Below are positions 4,256 through 33,511 of a stretch of DNA of 34,783 nt, piece after piece; position 1 is the stretch's first letter, and each line of letters begins with the position of its first letter. The DNA is taken from the sequence record NC_028992.1. One strand, 5' to 3'. Made by a program: the position numbers and the translations under genes. A model generated the notes under the pieces. The model did no database searches. It was not told the origin of the DNA and saw only the letters and a list, made by a program, of their open reading frames with translations.

Positions 4256-4952
4256 TTTCCACTACACCCCTCATATAGCCATTATGGACGTAAATGAACA
4301 AGATGTTACCGTAGAATGTGTAGGAGATATTGTATCCGATCACGGTCACGTTACTAACGTTCCCGAGAACTGGTTGGTAGAATAACGCACTGCCGTTCAC
4401 AACGACGCCGTTGTTGTAGTAAAGTTTCGTTCCTGGGACGAGCTCAATATACCAGCCCCAAGGTAACGTTTCGTTATACTTCCCGCTGTAGTACAATACG
4501 GAGAAGTTCGGGTTGACGATGGGAGGCCTCGTTATGTTTGGCGTCACATAAACTGGGGAGTTTACAAAGTTGTACCCTGAGTAGACCTGGACGTAGATCG
4601 GGGTAAAAGGCGGTATGAAGTAGAGGGGCGAGGGTGCAGAGATATTGATCAGGCGCCACGAGTGGGGTGGGATAACTGGCAGTGTGCAGTTGTACGGTGC
4701 ATAGGCCATAATTTGGCTTGAGACGACCCACCTTTTCTCGCTACCAAACATGCTAAGGAGGAAGACGGGATAAACTGGGGAGTTTCCGTAGTTTGTAACG
4801 TTCAAGCACACCACGTCCCAGTACCCCACATCACCAACATCATAGACCCTTACGATGTTCACCGTTAGCGGCAACGTTGGTCTCCACATTAATGATATCG
4901 TGAGTATTTCGAGTACAATGATACTAATTATTGCTAGTACTTTCCAGCTCAT
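4245..4952 (-). CDS. Membrane-anchored surface glycoprotein
   Basis: N-terminal signal/anchor; beta-rich Y/N/V/P composition; many N-x-S/T sequons; contains two copies of the 16-mer. Confidence 0.75.
   Translation of the reverse strand: MSWKVLAIISIIVLEILTISLMWRPTLPLTVNIVRVYDVGDVGYWDVVCLNVTNYGNSPVYPVFLLSMFGSEKRWVVSSQIMAYAPYNCTLPVIPPHSWRLINISAPSPLYFIPPFTPIYVQVYSGYNFVNSPVYVTPNITRPPIVNPNFSVLYYSGKYNETLPWGWYIELVPGTKLYYNNGVVVNGSALFYQPVLGNVSNVTVIGYNISYTFYGNILFIYVHNGYMRGVVENGS
4549..4564 (+). repeat. 16-mer site TAAACTGGGGAGTTTA (in CDS)
   Basis: Exact match. Confidence 0.9.
4771..4785 (+). repeat. 16-mer site, 15/16 (in CDS)
   Basis: TAAACTGGGGAGTTT. Confidence 0.85.
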
Positions 4953-8685: not shown

Positions 8686-8709
8686 TACAGGATAACGAGA
8701 AAGGAGGGC

Positions 8710-8720
8710 TAAAAAATAAA
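8710..8720 (-). promoter_or_regulatory. T-rich upstream element TTTATTTTTTA
   Basis: 25 nt before ATG 8685. Confidence 0.6.
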
Positions 8721-12577: not shown

Positions 12578-12600
12578 CGTTGAATAGTAGGGGAAAGGGC

Positions 12601-12611
12601 TAAAAAATAAA
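12601..12611 (-). promoter_or_regulatory. T-rich upstream element TTTATTTTTTA
   Basis: 24 nt before ATG 12577. Confidence 0.6.
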
Positions 12612-13006: not shown

Positions 13007-13029
13007 TAAGGGGAAATAGGAGAAATGAC

Positions 13030-13040
13030 TAAAAAATAAA
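13030..13040 (-). promoter_or_regulatory. T-rich upstream element TTTATTTTTTA
   Basis: 24 nt before ATG 13006. Confidence 0.6.
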
Positions 13041-18371: not shown

Positions 18372-18394
18372 CGAAAAAGTGTAGGAGGAGGGGC

Positions 18395-18405
18395 TAAAAA
18401 ATAAA
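18395..18405 (-). promoter_or_regulatory. T-rich upstream element TTTATTTTTTA heading the giant-protein operon
   Basis: 24 nt before ATG 18371; no upstream gene on this strand to terminate. Confidence 0.65.
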
Positions 18406-26946: not shown

Positions 26947-26962
26947 TTAACTGGGGAGTTTA
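26947..26962 (+). repeat. 16-mer site containing the stop of 26960-27727
   Basis: TTAACTGGGGAGTTTA. Confidence 0.9.
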
Positions 26963-27830: not shown

Positions 27831-27925
27831 CTTGCTCAATTTTCTCATCGCTCTTCCTGAATATTATTACTCTATTCTCTAAATCAAGATATGGTGTGTA
27901 TTCATTTAAAAATGATACTATTTGT
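27831..27925. repeat. Copy of 25618-25712 (73 bp identical, then degenerate)
   Basis: 27831-27903 equals 25618-25690. Confidence 0.92.
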
Positions 27926-28630
27926 CAGATAATTCATCAAATTCGGCTTCCTTATCCCTATCAACCTCTCCCTGTGCTGGGGAATGTATTGGCTAAAGTC
28001 AATTTTCCTAGTTTCGAACCCCTCTTTTTTGAGCGAATTAACTAAAGGTTCCGCGTAAACGTTCTCGTAAAACGCGTAAACTGGTTTGACAGAATTGACA
28101 ACCCTCAGGTATTCCTGCGTCAGCTCGTCTGACCCTGCATACAATCTGAAGTTCCTGAAAGCGTTGAGCGGAGTGTAGTCCTCGCACGGTGGAGAACCTA
28201 CAATTATGTCGAATTTCTTGGAGGGCTCGTACTTCCTTATATCAATATTAAGGATATTGTATTCGAACTCTTCGTTGTACTTTTTCAGCTCCTTAAATAT
28301 CATGTGTAGTACCTTAACCTTTCCAACATCTATTTCTACGGCTTCAACATAAAGGGGCTGAGGGAAGAAATAGAGGAATGCACCGATAGACCAGCCACCG
28401 ATGCCAGCGAAGAGATCTAGCATCGATTTACCTTTCACCTGGTTCTCCTTGAAGATATGATAGACGGCAAAAGGAGGAATTGCATCCGCGAGGTAATCTA
28501 TTAGGTCGTTTTTAGGTAATTTAAACAGAAGAAACGGAGGAAAAGTTTGCATCCATAATGCTAAATTTTCGTCGAATCGTTTATTGTATCGTGTATCCCT
28601 CCTCCAAATACCGCTTACTGTATTTATCAT
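27902..28630 (-). CDS. C5-cytosine DNA methyltransferase, circularly permuted (IX-X-I-IV-VI-VIII)
   Basis: QTFP (IX-like) and DAIPP (X-like) precede DLFAGIGG (I), GSPPC (IV), ENV (VI) and QHRER (VIII). Confidence 0.8.
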   Translation of the reverse strand: MINTVSGIWRRDTRYNKRFDENLALWMQTFPPFLLFKLPKNDLIDYLADAIPPFAVYHIFKENQVKGKSMLDLFAGIGGWSIGAFLYFFPQPLYVEAVEIDVGKVKVLHMIFKELKKYNEEFEYNILNIDIRKYEPSKKFDIIVGSPPCEDYTPLNAFRNFRLYAGSDELTQEYLRVVNSVKPVYAFYENVYAEPLVNSLKKEGFETRKIDFSQYIPQHRERLIGIRKPNLMNYLTNSIIFK

Positions 28631-28667: not shown

Positions 28668-29610
28668 TCACTCCCACCATGTCATTAGATTGCTTGTCTG
28701 TGAGACTTTCCGTTCCTTTAACCTCTTTTGTTGTAATTTCTCCTCAATCTTTTCCCTTAACTTTGTCCTCAATCTCTTGGCATCTTCTCTCTCAATTATC
28801 TCTATCTGCGGTTTTCCGAAAAGTGCGTTAGCACCAATCCTTTCTAAGATTACATCCTTTAACTCTAAGTCTATTTCATAGCCTATCGCATCCCTTTTCA
28901 ATTCGTTAGCGACCTTTAACGTAGTGCCAGTCCCAGCAAAGGGGTCTAGAACTGTATCCCCTACGTAAGAGTAAAGCGTAATAATTCTCCTAGCTAGCTC
29001 CTCGGGAAACGGTGCTGTATATTTCGAGTATTTATCCTGAGGCAGTACGTGACCTATTTCCCACACACTCAAATACCACTTCTCCCTTTGAAATTTATTC
29101 ACATCTATTTTACTTTCCTCCTTATTCCTAGGGACAAATTTCCCTGGCTTCTTAAACACTACTATTTCTTCATAAATGAAATCTGGATAATAATAAAGAG
29201 GGTAAGGATGTTGGAAGGAGAACTCCACTCCTCCTACTAATCCTGATGTAAAATTCTGGTTTTTTCCAAATGATCCTTTCTTGATATTTAAAACCCAAGC
29301 TTTGCATAATTTTTATCAAATCTGCAACTATAGGGTAAAGGTCCCCATCTACCCTCATATCAGCTACAACGAAAACCGCGACCCTGCCTTCCTCTAGGAC
29401 CCTGAAAATCTCTTTTCCCACTCCTTTTAGCAGGCTCAGGTAATCGTCATAAGAAGGAAAAAGGTCTGGGAAGTCAAAAGGTGCGTTATAGTAAGGAGGA
29501 GAAGTTAGGACCAAACCCACACTATTATCCTTAACTTCTTTCATATTTCTAGAGTCTCCAAATATAATTCTGACCTCCCTGGCCCTAAAAGGCTGATTTG
29601 TTGTTATCAT
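28668..29610 (-). CDS. Beta-class N4-C/N6-A DNA methyltransferase with a 1-nt frameshift
   Basis: TSPPY in ORF 29170-29610; DPFAGTGTT in ORF 28668-29228; removing one C at 29213-29214 gives GVLL-QHPYP. Confidence 0.85.
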
Positions 29611-30629
29611 AACGCCACCTCGAGCTTTCCTGGCACTAGGGATGGCTCTCCCAGCTCATGTCCGCATCTAGGACACTTTCCTCCGTACATTGCCTTTACT
29701 TCCGAAGGTAGTTTTATGCCGAAAACCTCCTGTCCTACTCTCTCAAATCTATAAAGCTCGAACCCGCAGTTCTTACATTTGTACCTTATAGGCCCTAGTA
29801 TGTTTAGGATTTCCTTGTATCTCATCCTCAAAACTAATTCTGATATATTCAGTGTTTCCGCTATTTCCTTTTGTGTTTTATTAATGTCCATCAACTTAGA
29901 TGCAATATAAACTGCAGCGGCACCGAATGCTAAACGGCTCTTTCCGCTAGTTAATCCCCGTTTTTGCATTTGCTCCACTATTTCTACTACTTTAGTTTCT
30001 ACGGTCAGTGGTAAGTTCAATTTGTTTAATATTATTGGAATATATTTTGTTGGTGTATTCACTTTAGGTTTAAAATATGGCACGACTTCATTGATCCTTT
30101 TTAAAGCCTTCCAGACTGCCCTTTCGGAAAGGTCAAACCTCGCTTTAAGCTCCTGTAAACTCAAGGGAATGTTGTTGATTTGGGACGCATAATATAATAC
30201 AACAGCGATCAGTGCATCGGGCTTAATCCTCATATAGGATTCATCCCTAAATAATTTTTTCACTATGATTGCAGCGGTCTCCTTTACGTGTTCTGGCAAG
30301 CCTAGCTTCGAAGCCTCAGCGTTTAGCCTCGATAGATATGTTACTAATTTTTTATCCTTGTATGAAACCCTAACCGAATTTTGTAATCTTCGCATTTTTA
30401 TTAGTTTAATCTTGTCTTCTACATTTCTATATCCTATTTTTCCTATTTTAGTCGTGAGTCCTTGGTCGTGAACCTTTAAACTAAGCCTTGATCCTACTCT
30501 TTCCCGCTCTAGTCTATCTGTGTCACTGAATGTCCTCCATTCTGGGCCAGGGTCAACTACCCTTTCCTCTATGACCTCTCCCGTCTCGGTGTCTATGAGC
30601 TCTCCTCTTTCGGCGTCGAAGACTATCAT
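29607..30629 (-). CDS. tfb: Transcription factor B homologue with an extra C-terminal Zn ribbon
   Basis: FDAERGE..TETGEV..., B-reader GPEWRTF, HDQGLTT, two cyclin folds, TQKEIA HTH; then CKNC...CPRC. Confidence 0.92.
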   Translation of the reverse strand: MIVFDAERGELIDTETGEVIEERVVDPGPEWRTFSDTDRLERERVGSRLSLKVHDQGLTTKIGKIGYRNVEDKIKLIKMRRLQNSVRVSYKDKKLVTYLSRLNAEASKLGLPEHVKETAAIIVKKLFRDESYMRIKPDALIAVVLYYASQINNIPLSLQELKARFDLSERAVWKALKRINEVVPYFKPKVNTPTKYIPIILNKLNLPLTVETKVVEIVEQMQKRGLTSGKSRLAFGAAAVYIASKLMDINKTQKEIAETLNISELVLRMRYKEILNILGPIRYKCKNCGFELYRFERVGQEVFGIKLPSEVKAMYGGKCPRCGHELGEPSLVPGKLEVAL

Positions 30630-30640
30630 GCTCTCACCCT

Positions 30641-30796
30641 TTAAACTCCCCAGTTTTCTCTAGTTTTTCTTACATTATTTAGATAAAACTCGAGGGCTTC
30701 TCTGACTACATCACTCCTCGAAAGCCTACGGTTCATAGCGTACGTATCGAGTTTTATCAGGAGATCATCGGGAATTTTGACCGTTATAACCCTCAT
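30641..30796 (-). CDS. Ribbon-helix-helix (CopG-like) regulator not in the ORF track
   Basis: MRVITVKIPDDLLIKLDTYAMNRRLSRSDVVREALEFYL...ENWGV*; SD AGGTGA; the stop lies in a 16-mer. Confidence 0.88.
   Translation of the reverse strand: MRVITVKIPDDLLIKLDTYAMNRRLSRSDVVREALEFYLNNVRKTRENWGV
30642..30657 (-). repeat. 16-mer site between RHH and tfb
   Basis: TAAACTCCCCAGTTTT. Confidence 0.9.
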
Positions 30797-30801
30797 TTTT
30801 C

Positions 30802-31020
30802 TCACCTAGTATTTTCCTCTTCTATTATTTTGAGAACACGGAATAGATTAGCCCCAATCTTATCTGACAAGAATGACGATGTCTCTAATCCTTGTTTCGC
30901 CCTGTCGAGATTCTTCAGAATTACATCCATTTTTATCATATGTACTAGGGCTTGCAACCTTCCTGCGTCCTCCTCGAGTTCATTTAATAGTTCTCGAATT
31001 TCTTCTTCTTTGCTAATCAT
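30802..31020 (-). CDS. Small coiled-coil protein
   Basis: Strong GAGGAGG SD; heptad pattern. Confidence 0.7.
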   Translation of the reverse strand: MISKEEEIRELLNELEEDAGRLQALVHMIKMDVILKNLDRAKQGLETSSFLSDKIGANLFRVLKIIEEENTR

Positions 31021-31391: not shown

Positions 31392-31427
31392 ATGACTTTT
31401 GAGTCACTAGGTATATTTAAAGTTTTT
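31392..31427 (-). promoter_or_regulatory. Canonical BRE/TATA with a downstream TGAC-N6-GTCA inverted repeat (possible operator)
   Basis: Minus strand AAAAACTTTAAATATA; plus strand TGACTTTTGAGTCA between the TATA box and the ATG. Confidence 0.5.
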
Positions 31428-31466
31428 GCCTGAATTTTAGGGCCAAATCCCGTTACTCAGTACGGC

Positions 31467-31772: not shown

Positions 31773-31831
31773 TTTTCTANTTTAACATCTGTCAGTGTTA
31801 CCTTATAAGTCATTAGTTAGCATCGGTCTAG

Positions 31832-31847
31832 AAAACTCCCCAGTTAA
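31832..31847 (-). repeat. 16-mer site
   Basis: AAAACTCCCCAGTTAA. Confidence 0.85.
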
Positions 31848-31874
31848 TTCCACGTTACGCATGACTTGATGGGN

Positions 31875-31890
31875 TAAACTGGGGAGTTTA
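31875..31890 (+). repeat. 16-mer site
   Basis: Exact match. Confidence 0.92.
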
Positions 31891-31961
31891 ACNCNNNTGA
31901 AGNCNAAACCCCAAACCAATCCAACCGAAATCTATATTAACTACAGTGTGAGGCTCAGCTT

Positions 31962-32240
31962 ATGAGAGCGGCGATGGAAAAAGGATCACAATCAAAATTT
32001 CTATTTAATGCGATGAGTCCCGAGGAATATACTAAGGCTAAGGAGTTCTATGAGTTCCTTAAGAGCATCACTAAATGCACGCATGGGTATCTCAGAATTG
32101 ACCGGAAGAAGCTAGTTGACATGACAGCCGCTTTTATGGAGGTTTCTCCCTATGAGGCCCACCAGATCCTCACAAAAATGATGCAATACGGATGGATTCA
32201 CACGATAGACAACCATTATATAATAGTTAACATAGATTGA
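31962..32240 (+). CDS. Small winged-helix-like protein
   Basis: VSPYEAHQILTKMMQYGWI helix pattern. Confidence 0.6.
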   Translation: MRAAMEKGSQSKFLFNAMSPEEYTKAKEFYEFLKSITKCTHGYLRIDRKKLVDMTAAFMEVSPYEAHQILTKMMQYGWIHTIDNHYIIVNID

Positions 32241-32265
32241 GGANCGTATTTACNAGAAAGNGGGT

Positions 32266-32281
32266 TAAACTGGGGAGTTTA
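32266..32281 (+). repeat. 16-mer site
   Basis: Exact match. Confidence 0.92.
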
Positions 32282-32694
32282 ACACAAATGAAGATTGAAA
32301 AGGGGAAAAATAAAGGGGCTTAAAGCATTCGCCTGCTCTATTGCCNCCATTGCATGCCNCCTGNGNGCCTNTCCTATTACAGTACATGGGCTTACAGTAG
32401 CCTCTTANGGCACTACTATACTATTATTACAATATTCTATTGTTATTCAATAGACTACTTACAGTATACTAGATAGGGGCAAGGCTAGTCCACGATCCGT
32501 TCACGCNCTTGGAAACGGTTTTTGNCGTNCCGTTTTTCTCTACGTATAGAACGTTAGCTTTGAAAAAGTTTCTGTTCGCTTGCTTTGAAATTGTAAAGAT
32601 GTTTTATTCACGTGGGGGTTTNCTTTCAGCTAGCTNAAATAAACTAAACGGCAAATGTCTGCTTTGGTTCTCAAAACTTTGAAATTTTTATCAT

Positions 32695-32710
32695 TAAACT
32701 GGGGAGTTTT
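32695..32710 (+). repeat. 16-mer site
   Basis: TAAACTGGGGAGTTTT. Confidence 0.88.
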
Positions 32711-32749
32711 TTCAGTTTTTTNCTTCACTTTTAGCGGGATTTTTTGAAA

Positions 32750-32765
32750 TAAACTGGGGAGTTTA
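32750..32765 (+). repeat. 16-mer site
   Basis: Exact match. Confidence 0.92.
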
Positions 32766-32838
32766 ACGGTACCTTGAATATTTATTACTAAAATGAGAAA
32801 AAAGGTCGATAGAATCAATTCAGCTAGGCCACGACTCT

Positions 32839-33511
32839 TTAGCCTCCTGGGAACTTCGGCTTATACGCCCAAGCTTCTAGTATATGCTTTGGGACTTCAA
32901 AACCTAGACCCTCTATCACTTTCTTCAGGAAGAGGAATATCCTGTCGAATTTGAGCGTGAACTTCGTCACTTCCACCAGCTTTTGTAACCTAAAAAAAAT
33001 CTTGCTGTACATCCACTGTTTCAGAGAGTCTACCGTCGTGAAGAACTCCACTTTATGTTTCTTCAGTTCCTCCTGGGCTCCAGGAGTAAACGCGTACGCT
33101 ACTATTGCGGGATAGGTGTGATATCCCTTCTCTCTAAGCTTGTTCACTATTTTGTAGATTTGGTTGAACTTCCACGGTAACTGGGCTGGCACAATGGGCT
33201 TCGAGGTTTGTAGCGAGAAGTAAACAACGAATGCCGTCTTCCTCTCCTTTTTCGTCCAATCTATCCGTCTGTGGGTCCTCGAGCTTGATGACGAGGATTC
33301 TGCCTCCGTACCCGTCTTCTTTAATTTCTACGGCTCCGTTCTCGTCCTTTATCCTCGATTTTGCCCACGCTGGCATGCTTATCAGATCGGCGACATCCTT
33401 AACCCCAAGTAGATCCTTCCTTAGGCTGTTAAACGTCCTCACGATCTCTCCTTTCATCTCGTATATCTTCAGCAGGAGATCTTCACGCCCCATATCAGAC
33501 CCCTCCGTCAT
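32839..33511 (-). CDS. Restriction-endonuclease-like (PD-(D/E)xK/Mrr-like) protein split by one extra A
   Basis: Shortening the A5 run at 33248-33252 joins the two ORFs (LDEKERKTAFVVYFSLQTS...AIVAYAFTPGAQEEL). Confidence 0.45.

Follow-up and report, generated by a model that had tools for sequence, protein, structure and literature searches.

The stretch of DNA analyzed here (the window) is the complete circular genome, 34,783 bp in length, of Sulfolobales virus YNP2 (SYV2; KP282680 / NC_028992), a metagenome-derived element from a Yellowstone hot spring. Its gene gp50 encodes a protein related to the archaeal transcription factor TFB. We find that this protein is a three-part chimera in which the remnant of a TFB1-type ribbon is joined to a TFB2-type core and to a Zn-ribbon domain captured from the host. 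From the sequence evidence described below we put at about 0.5 the probability that gp50, carried by a mobile element, works as an alternative transcription initiation factor with altered promoter-upstream recognition.

The gene call and the broad family of gp50 are already public. The existing record labels the product 'Zinc finger, TFIIB-type domain protein', and a homologue in the sister genome YNP1, 58.5% identical over the full length, is labeled putative TFB. TFBs encoded by mobile elements are likewise a known phenomenon, having been found in rudiviruses, Asgard elements, thaumarchaeal integrative and conjugative elements (ICEs), and haloarchaeal plasmids; a 2021 survey knew TFB homologues among archaeal viruses only from some rudiviruses. 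A literature search found no discussion of the architecture, family, or context of gp50. New here are the three-part chimera, the Zn-ribbon protein captured from the host, a recognition helix that has diversified throughout the family, and the association with an aCcr1 homologue. The gene and its parts are as follows.

29607..30629 (including the stop codon), minus strand: gp50, TFB-like protein with a C-terminal Zn-ribbon domain, 340 aa (open reading frame (ORF) with Pfam, PDB, and NCBIfam matches; identical to NC_028992 gp50)
30528..30629, minus strand: gp50 residues 1-34, truncated TFB1-type ribbon without cysteine and start of the B-reader (MIVFDAERGELIDTETGEVIEERVVDPGPEWRTF) (identity to TFB1; three strands in the structure model)
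29796..30527, minus strand: gp50 residues 35-278, TFB2-type B-reader loop, B-linker, and two cyclin repeats (identity to TFB2, core tree, Foldseek)
29817..29846, minus strand: gp50 residues 262-271, recognition helix for the B recognition element (BRE), ISELVLRMRY, in the helix-turn-helix (HTH) of cyclin repeat 2 (aligned to VTEVTVRNRY of P. woesei TFB)
29610..29795, minus strand: gp50 residues 279-340, Zn-ribbon domain with C283, C286, C317, and C320 and a VGQ..G..P.E motif (family alignment)

The TFB Fold and the N-terminal Part of gp50

The original prediction, made from the letters of the window, described a nearly full-length TFB with two cyclin repeats and the B-reader sequence GPEWRTF, and profile, PDB, and structural comparisons all agree. 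The Pfam TFIIB repeat (PF00382) matched gp50 with an E-value of 1.6e-27 in two stretches corresponding to the two cyclin repeats. A sequence search of the PDB returned human TFIIB (1.7e-24) and P. woesei TFBc (3e-22). An AlphaFold2 (AF2) model built on 80 sequences, with a predicted local distance difference test score (pLDDT) of 77, has three N-terminal strands, a B-reader helix (residues 36-42), a linker helix (residues 70-87), two cyclin folds, and a small C-terminal β/α domain. Foldseek placed the core of the model on 1D3U_B, the P. woesei TFB in complex with TATA-binding protein (TBP) plus BRE/TATA DNA, with a template modeling (TM) score of 0.80 and a root mean square deviation of 2.4 Å, and also returned TFIIB chains of pre-initiation complexes. 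Thus by Pfam, PDB match, and AF2 with Foldseek the two cyclin-fold repeats of the TFB/TFIIB core are present, and the B-reader and B-linker lie between ribbon and core.

The N-terminal ribbon is truncated. Pfam Zn_Ribbon_TF scored 35.6 bits (cut-off 29) on residues 2-34, a match that spans only positions 11-43 of the 43 in the profile. As had been read from the DTETG stretch (residues 13-17; GPEWRTF occupies residues 28-34), there is no cysteine anywhere before C283, and gp50 has no N-terminal Cys4 (or Cys3His) Zn ribbon. The ORF begins MIVFD. Its frame is closed by a TAG 11 codons upstream, the interval contains no start codon, and nearly all relatives start at the same M-I-I-F-D, a few having a short N-terminal extension. 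Because the frame is closed upstream and the relatives share the start, the loss of the first Zn knuckle is real. gp50 retains every ribbon, B-reader, and linker position that is nearly invariant among 80 TFBs of cells and mobile elements (D5, G9, G17, V19, D26, G28, P29, W31, R32, R44, G46, H54, D55, T60, and I62).

Chimeric Ancestry

Residues 1-34 of gp50 are 79% identical to a canonical TFB1-type protein (P0069) and ∼74% identical to Sulfolobaceae TFB1, as against 41-62% for TFB2. The N terminus of Sulfolobaceae TFB1 reads ...CPPDKI[IV][FY]DEERGE[YF]IC[TS]ETGEVIEER.VDQGPEWRAF, and TFB2 N termini carry CPxC...CxxCG. The TFB1 sequences used in this comparison were taken from Sulfolobales genome loci; a word search with residues 1-60 had given 47 candidates, none of them a named TFB1. 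Two distant members of the fused family (P0051 and P0052) still have a TFB1-like ICPKDK...ICTETGEV. Sulfolobus TFB1 is reported to have only two of the four Zn-ligand cysteines (PMC6101594). This two-cysteine state was confirmed in the genome sequences, so that TFB1 too lacks a Cys4 ribbon. Because the N terminus of gp50 is of this type, its loss of cysteine is less radical than it appears; the same trend is already seen in the essential factor of the host and has run to its end in gp50, so the loss is not unique.

The core has a different origin. Over residues 35-278 gp50 shares 50-68% identity with TFB2 of Sulfolobales, a chromosomal protein of ∼292 aa, and 25-30% with canonical crenarchaeal TFB/TFB1. 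In a maximum-likelihood tree of these residues the fused family falls inside a 61-row Sulfolobales TFB2 clade (97 in the Shimodaira-Hasegawa-like approximate likelihood ratio test, SH-aLRT), itself within a larger TFB2-like clade (99) that is apart from the TFB1 group (92). The clade is identified as TFB2 (SSO0946 / Saci_1341) by the S. acidocaldarius and 'IIB 2' proteins that it holds. In the alignment and phylogeny against TFB paralogues that had been proposed as a check, the core lies within TFB2 and residues 1-34 resemble TFB1. The remaining features of a TFB2 orthologue, namely chromosomal location, a length of ∼292 aa, a Cys4 ribbon, and the absence of a C-terminal extension, are not found in gp50.

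Some fused members contain segments that are 83-94% identical to host TFB2 in protein sequence. The member P0020 is 94% and 86% identical to the TFB2 protein of Acidianus sp. HS-5 in the two cyclin repeats and 52-54% identical in ribbon and B-reader. At the DNA level its core is 80-87% identical to the Acidianus sp. HS-5 tfb2 gene, a figure that falls to 53-64% at the 5′ end (L004 10001-11014 versus L221 3001-3879), and its 5′ and 3′ ends are nearer to YNP2 than to host tfb2. P0028 (L006 10001-11017) shows the same mosaic pattern with Saccharolobus TFB2. The alignments indicate that the cores of P0020 and P0028 stem from recent exchange with host tfb2, that is, from host-element recombination inside the gene of a general transcription factor. 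Since some of the cores are mosaic with host tfb2, it is the two ends, ribbon remnant and Zn-ribbon domain, that form the constant, element-specific modules of the fused family.

The C-terminal Zn-ribbon Domain and Its Stand-alone Host Family

The additional CKNC...CPRC domain that had been noticed in the sequence is present. Its cysteines (C283-x2-C286 ... C317-x2-C320) are encoded by nt 29670-29783, the domain extends to nt 29610, and all four are invariant in the 18 intact members that were aligned. The domain had no Pfam, NCBIfam, or PDB family match; a PDB profile search gave matches at the level of a single knuckle only, as did Pfam Zn_Ribbon_TF, below threshold.

A profile of residues 278-340 was searched with hmmsearch against 1.84 billion representatives and found 162 representative clusters at E≤1e-3. 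Almost all are proteins of 55-130 aa with the domain at the N terminus, the best stand-alone match having an E-value of 3.7e-25 over profile positions 3-55. The C-terminal domain of gp50 has the features of this family: CxxC-x(about 30)-CxxC, the VGQ..G..P.E motif, and a significant profile match. The stand-alone proteins are encoded on the chromosomes of Saccharolobus, Acidianus, Sulfolobus, Metallosphaera, Stygiolobus, and Sulfodiicoccus, where they are labeled 'hypothetical protein' and lie in a conserved housekeeping neighborhood with the CCA-adding enzyme, RFC, Cdc6, and PCNA. In two further clusters (P0105 and P0160) the domain is joined to ribbon-helix-helix (RHH) DNA-binding domains, one of them aCcr1-like, and these fusions tie the Zn-ribbon family to transcription factors. 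The stand-alone family, whose members are in part without any name, extends beyond Sulfolobales to chromosomes of other Thermoproteota; the loci and proteins recorded for the family as a whole are L013 987-1202, L014-L017 8001-8243, and P0085-P0274.

Two other identities were examined and rejected. The C-terminal ribbon is not a transposed or duplicated copy of the TFB N-terminal ribbon, as hhalign aligned only 14 columns, corresponding to one knuckle. Nor is the stand-alone family RpoP/Rpb12, a name automatically given in its source: NF001605 scored 17-20 bits against a cut-off of 63, on an 11-residue knuckle.

The Fused Family and Its Recognition Helix

In a homologue search covering 5.8 billion proteins, ∼30 fused proteins of 332-354 aa matched gp50 over its full length with 45-83% identity, all on contigs of ≤35 kb. 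The contigs are either virus-like, with an SSV1 D-63 homologue, integrase, and structural genes, or plasmid-like, with ParA/ParB. The search for the TFB and Zn-ribbon architecture elsewhere that the original prediction had called for thus found it on contigs of viral or plasmid size only. A near-identical host paralogue with the same fusion, which would have counted against the prediction, was absent; the next-best matches were the chromosomal Sulfolobales proteins of ∼292 aa (TFB2), which have 51-59% identity over 81% coverage and no C-terminal domain. Among sequenced plasmids no close relative of gp50 was found, only distant haloarchaeal and Thermococcus TFBs with <36% identity. The junction LGPxxY-CxxC and the four cysteines are common to family copies from many metagenomes. 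Two members (P0027 and P0029) are truncated.

The helix that reads the BRE is altered, and the alteration noted in gp50 (ISELVLRMRY, residues 262-271, versus VTEVTVRNRY) proved to be family-wide. In cellular TFBs this helix is nearly always (V/I)TEVT(V/I)RNRY. The consensus is kept in one of 30 fused members and differs in the other 29. Substitutions in the family affect five of the ten positions, including those of the Val and the Asn, and the invariant Arg (R268) is retained. Relative to ITEVTIRNRY of host TFB2, the gp50 helix differs at 6 of 10 positions, or at 5 if the cellular V/I alternatives are allowed.

Mean pairwise identity within the fused family is highest in residues 1-34 (0.80), followed by the Zn-ribbon domain (0.68), the other parts having 0.57-0.62. 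The second cyclin repeat, which bears the HTH, is the most conserved part of host TFB2 (0.70). This pattern of constraint argues for retained engagement of RNA polymerase with altered or relaxed reading of the BRE, and against a simple decoy.

Proposed Function and Alternative Explanations

gp50 would be made from an early or regulatory operon with a canonical BRE/TATA promoter, together with a cell-division repressor of the aCcr1 family (both described below). Judged by conservation, its cyclin core would bind host TBP on TATA DNA, and its ribbon strands and B-reader/linker would engage host RNA polymerase. The diverged HTH helix and the added Zn-ribbon domain may confer a different promoter-upstream preference or a new protein contact. 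As the domain starts about ten residues after the recognition helix, it is expected, from the geometry of 1D3U, to lie upstream of the BRE; this position and the variability of the HTH are the grounds on which we infer altered upstream recognition. In competition with host TFB1 and TFB2, gp50 could then shift RNA polymerase to another set of promoters. Candidate targets are the genes of the element itself, such as those with the T-rich TTTATTTTTTAGCCC class of upstream sequence, or the host TFB2 (G1/S) regulon. A specificity switch toward T-rich viral promoters, as originally predicted, may thus be one outcome. A more elaborate version is that the small host Zn-ribbon protein is an unrecognized archaeal initiation cofactor that docks on the C-terminal end of TFB, upstream of the BRE, and that its fusion to a TFB1/TFB2 chimera makes a sigma-like factor, in which the hypervariable HTH and the Zn-ribbon would recognize upstream promoter elements peculiar to the mobile element and bring about a temporal switch from the canonical early promoter to T-rich late promoters; we regard this version as tentative and rather improbable.

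Several observations weigh against a working factor with a new specificity. The TFIIB model of NCBIfam (PRK00423) scored 196.8 bits, under its cut-off of 384. The first Zn knuckle is missing, and only a model with a pLDDT of ∼75 suggests that the three strands left can still fold and bind to the dock of RNA polymerase. The net charge of the Zn-ribbon domain is only modestly positive, and a Foldseek search of the PDB with the isolated domain model had a best E-value of 0.35 and returned no structural relative. The variability of the recognition helix could reflect relaxed constraint instead of new specificity. Finally, the association of gp50 with the T-rich promoters is a co-occurrence in one genome and its close relatives only.

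The observations on the ribbon bear on a reading that had been offered beside the switch, in which gp50 is a dominant-negative decoy. With its crippled ribbon it would hold TBP-promoter complexes or sequester RNA polymerase, repressing the host globally or repressing TFB2-dependent genes. The deletion of the first Zn knuckle and the absence of any N-terminal cysteine would suit such a role, and the neighboring aCcr1 homologue is itself a repressor. There are also precedents: TFB3 and N-terminal TFB fragments compete with TFB1 for RNA polymerase (PMC2246294), and repression of RNA polymerase is known for archaeal viruses, an example being ATV RIP (PMC5123050). However, in a simple decoy there would be no call for the B-reader/linker invariants, nor for ribbon strands that are so very strongly conserved, and host TFB1 functions with a ribbon lacking Cys4. 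The conserved Zn-ribbon and the diversifying HTH suggest a function gained and not lost, and we disfavor the decoy as unlikely. The ancestry of the core raises another explanation. The gene tfb2 is expressed cyclically, is induced before G1/S and repressed by UV, and its product is the proposed driver of replication genes (PMC2246294; PMC9976878). gp50 might therefore be a constitutive form of TFB2, with essentially the specificity of the host factor, that keeps replication-phase genes on while the aCcr1 homologue blocks division. The placement of the core in the TFB2 clade, the recombination of the family with host tfb2, and the presence of an aCcr1-family RHH gene beside or near the TFB across relatives, viral aCcr1 homologues being known to arrest division, all accord with this. 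Yet the TFB2 regulon is itself hypothetical, the N terminus of gp50 is TFB1-like and not TFB2-like, and the recognition helix is the very part that departs from TFB2, which speaks against identical specificity in the YNP2 lineage; we consider a TFB2 mimic doubtful, about as much so as a decoy.

It is scarcely credible that gp50 is a decaying passenger or an annotation artifact, such as a degenerating copy of host tfb2 reading through into a small Zn-ribbon ORF. The neighboring methyltransferase is frameshifted, the metagenomic assembly has ambiguous bases nearby, and truncated family members exist. Against this, ∼30 independent full-length copies from many metagenomes have the same start, the same junction, and the four invariant cysteines; with identities of 45-83% they cannot be a single sequence duplicated in assembly; the core is less conserved than either terminus; and the structure models are confident. 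Decay is effectively excluded by this evidence, and an alternative initiation factor remains our preferred reading.

Comparison with Known Systems

Archaeal viruses are thought to be fully dependent on the TBP, TFB, and RNA polymerase of the host, and to our knowledge no virus-encoded general initiation factor has been characterized for them. The cellular paralogues each resemble a part of gp50. TFB2 of Sulfolobales (SSO0946 / Saci_1341), a low-abundance, cell-cycle-regulated protein, is similar in B-reader loop, B-linker, and cyclin repeats (50-68%). Unlike gp50 it is chromosomal and ∼292 aa long; its ribbon is of the Cys4 type (CPxC...CxxCG), its recognition helix reads ITEVTIRNRY, and it lacks a C-terminal domain, where gp50 adds a Zn-ribbon of ∼60 aa. 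The housekeeping TFB1 of Sulfolobales/Thermoprotei is similar in the N-terminal 34 residues (74-79%) and, like gp50, has no Cys4 Zn site. It differs in keeping the first knuckle (CPPDK) and two cysteines, in a linker and core that are only 25-30% identical, and in having no C-terminal domain. The truncated, UV-induced TFB3 of Sulfolobus is a TFB-family protein with an accessory role, competing or cooperating at RNA polymerase/pre-initiation complexes (PMC2246294, PMC6101594). TFB3 has a Cys4 ribbon and neither B-reader nor DNA-binding core, whereas gp50 is the reverse, with core and B-reader present and the Zn site lost.

The TFBs of the rudiviruses ARV2, ARV3, MRV1, and SSRV1 are, like gp50, encoded by viruses of Sulfolobales and have a TFB1-type N terminus (bioRxiv 10.1101/2020.01.16.907410). 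Nevertheless, they are only 26-28% identical to gp50, are ∼281 aa long, have two cysteines, and have no C-terminal Zn ribbon. In the ARV3 (L219 476-1318) and ARV2 (L220 580-1425) proteins the N-terminal ∼30 residues are almost as in the YNP family, and the B-reader loop, linker, and recognition helix are not conserved. TFB/TFIIB proteins of thaumarchaeal ICEs, Asgard viruses and mobile genetic elements, and haloarchaeal megaplasmids are likewise carried by mobile elements (PMC6563490; 10.1101/2021.07.29.453957). They belong to other lineages, and the literature found reports no chimeric or C-terminal Zn-ribbon architecture for them, nor a functional characterization of any of them. The stand-alone Zn-ribbon proteins (Saccharolobus WP_314124198, SUSAZ_06160) share residues 279-340 of gp50 (Y-x-C-x2-C-G ... 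VGQD.YG..TPSE ... C-P-x-C-G ... PSL.DI). They differ from it in being free-standing proteins of 55-130 aa that are chromosomally encoded in a housekeeping neighborhood.

Phage sigma factors such as T4 gp55 and SPO1 gp28 are a functional analogy only. There the virus provides the host polymerase with a promoter-specificity subunit, made from an early promoter of host type; these proteins belong to families unrelated to gp50. The fused family offers a direct route to ask whether archaeal mobile elements redirect polymerase as phages do via sigma factors, and the fusion is the first functional lead for the small Zn-ribbon protein of Sulfolobales chromosomes. The pairing with aCcr1 and the ancestry in TFB2 (G1/S) would tie gp50 to viral manipulation of the archaeal cell cycle. 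The tfb2 mosaicism also shows that host and element continue to exchange genetic material inside a core transcription factor.

Operon Context

gp50 had been taken to head an operon. It is instead an internal gene with its own Shine-Dalgarno-like site, the order on the minus strand being gp53-gp52-gp51-gp50, with gp53, gp52 (SSV1 D-63 family), and gp51 mutually overlapping. The features around it are listed here.

31414..31428, minus strand: putative promoter of gp53-gp52-gp51-gp50-gp49-gp48, an A-rich BRE-like CAAAAAC followed by the TATA sequence TTTAAATA (read from sequence)
30641..30805, minus strand: gp51, 54-aa RHH protein of the aCcr1 cell-cycle regulator family, directly upstream of gp50 (NCBIfam aCcr1_fam, 62.1 bits versus a cut-off of 60; Pfam RHH_1)
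30633..30639, minus strand: Shine-Dalgarno-like GGGTGAG, 3 nt upstream of the gp50 ATG (read from sequence)
28668..29610, minus strand: gp49 and gp48, the two frameshift-separated parts of one N4/N6 DNA methyltransferase (Pfam N6_N4_Mtase, profile positions 2-91 and 97-219)
27902..28630, minus strand: gp47, C5-cytosine methyltransferase-like ORF with the N-terminal half of the profile only (PF00145, 1.6e-13, positions 3-125 of 324)

The GGGTGAG sequence lies in the 11-nt gap between the end of gp51 and the gp50 ATG; Shine-Dalgarno sites are typical of internal operon genes in Sulfolobales. The CAAAAAC-TTTAAATA sequence upstream of gp53 probably acts as a canonical archaeal promoter. A further TATA sequence is found upstream of gp54, and an A/T-rich box within gp51 is a possible internal promoter.

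In all virus-like related contigs examined an RHH gene adjoins the TFB gene or is one gene away. aCcr1 represses cdvA and blocks cell division, as do its viral homologues, and homologues in YNP1 and YNP2 have been mentioned (PMC9976878). In one relative (L099 9476-11023, compared with window 29607-30805) an ORF of 117 aa stands between the RHH gene and the TFB gene, directly after a copy of the 16-mer described in the next section.

As to the two methyltransferases that had been predicted, gp49 and gp48 are parts of a single enzyme, and gp47 is C5-methyltransferase-like; its match to TIGR00675 is below the cut-off. The start of gp49 overlaps the gp50 stop (ATGA). The gp49 and gp48 halves are 81% and 79% identical to the collinear halves of an intact 308-aa enzyme in a related contig (L009). 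The frameshift lies near nt 29215-29228, and the enzyme is also annotated as two ORFs in YNP1; a sequencing error, a pseudogene, or programmed frameshifting could be the cause. The closest relative contig (L099, whose TFB is 81% identical) is without the methyltransferase block, and the methyltransferases are therefore not a family-wide association of the fused TFBs. The whole gp46-gp49 block, a membrane protein and the methyltransferases, is absent from that contig, which marks it as a cassette insertion in YNP2.

Repeated Motif and T-rich Promoter-like Class

The original prediction placed the operon inside a module bounded by a 16-mer. The inverted pair of copies (26949/30642) is real, but it is two of 14 copies dispersed over the genome.

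30641..30656, minus strand: 16-mer copy AAACTGGGGAGTTTAA, which overlaps the stop codon of gp51 and forms an inverted pair with the copy at 26948-26962 (motif scan)
26948..26962, plus strand: the same motif just past the gp46 stop (motif scan)

The motif AAACTGGGGAGTTT(AA) occurs in the YNP2 genome 14 times versus 0.04 expected, mostly at gene ends and clustered at 31.4-32.8 kb (window positions 4550, 4772, 18440, 20025, 21959, 26948, 30643, 31472, 31833, 31876, 32267, 32696, 32751, and 34678). At ∼31780-32700, an intergenic, repeat-rich region, scattered N in the sequence and X in the ORF translations indicate a low-quality or polymorphic assembly, and the motif copies there are uncertain owing to the ambiguous bases. 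The position at the end of gp51 is also occupied by the 16-mer in three related contigs (L009, L010, and L099), and the insertion of the extra ORF exactly after this copy in a relative fits module shuffling at the motif. The AAACTGGGGAGTTT 14-mer has 20 copies in the conjugative plasmid pNOB8 (L098). The 14/16-mer is probably the recombination motif described for Sulfolobus conjugative plasmids, its presence in pNOB8 being the verified part; a literature search for the exact 16-mer string found no paper. The motif bears no relation to A(T/G)G(A)TA(G)A(T/G)TACN, the sequence published for the aCcr1 box, and so is not such a box. In the same part of the window, 32742-33469 (gp56/gp57) has 67-75% DNA identity to 'hypothetical protein' regions of pAH1, pING1, pARN3, pARN4, and pHVE14, and from this resemblance YNP2 shares a module with plasmids of the pNOB8 family.

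A T-rich class of viral promoters had also been predicted, and a promoter-like class of this kind exists.

1510-1524, 8706-8720, 12597-12611, 13026-13040, and 18391-18405, all minus strand: copies of TTTATTTTTTAGCCC, upstream of gp04, gp17, gp20, gp21, and gp27

The five copies (0-2 mismatches) stand at a fixed distance of 19-20 nt from the start codons. They look like promoters of a T-rich class that would serve leaderless mRNAs and that differs from the canonical promoter of gp53. A scan of IMG/VR for the 15-mer gave at least 119 single chance matches in unrelated contigs, the sequence being too AT-rich to inform on co-occurrence with the TFB. Two related contigs (L099 and L009) each have one conserved copy that lies upstream of a gene.

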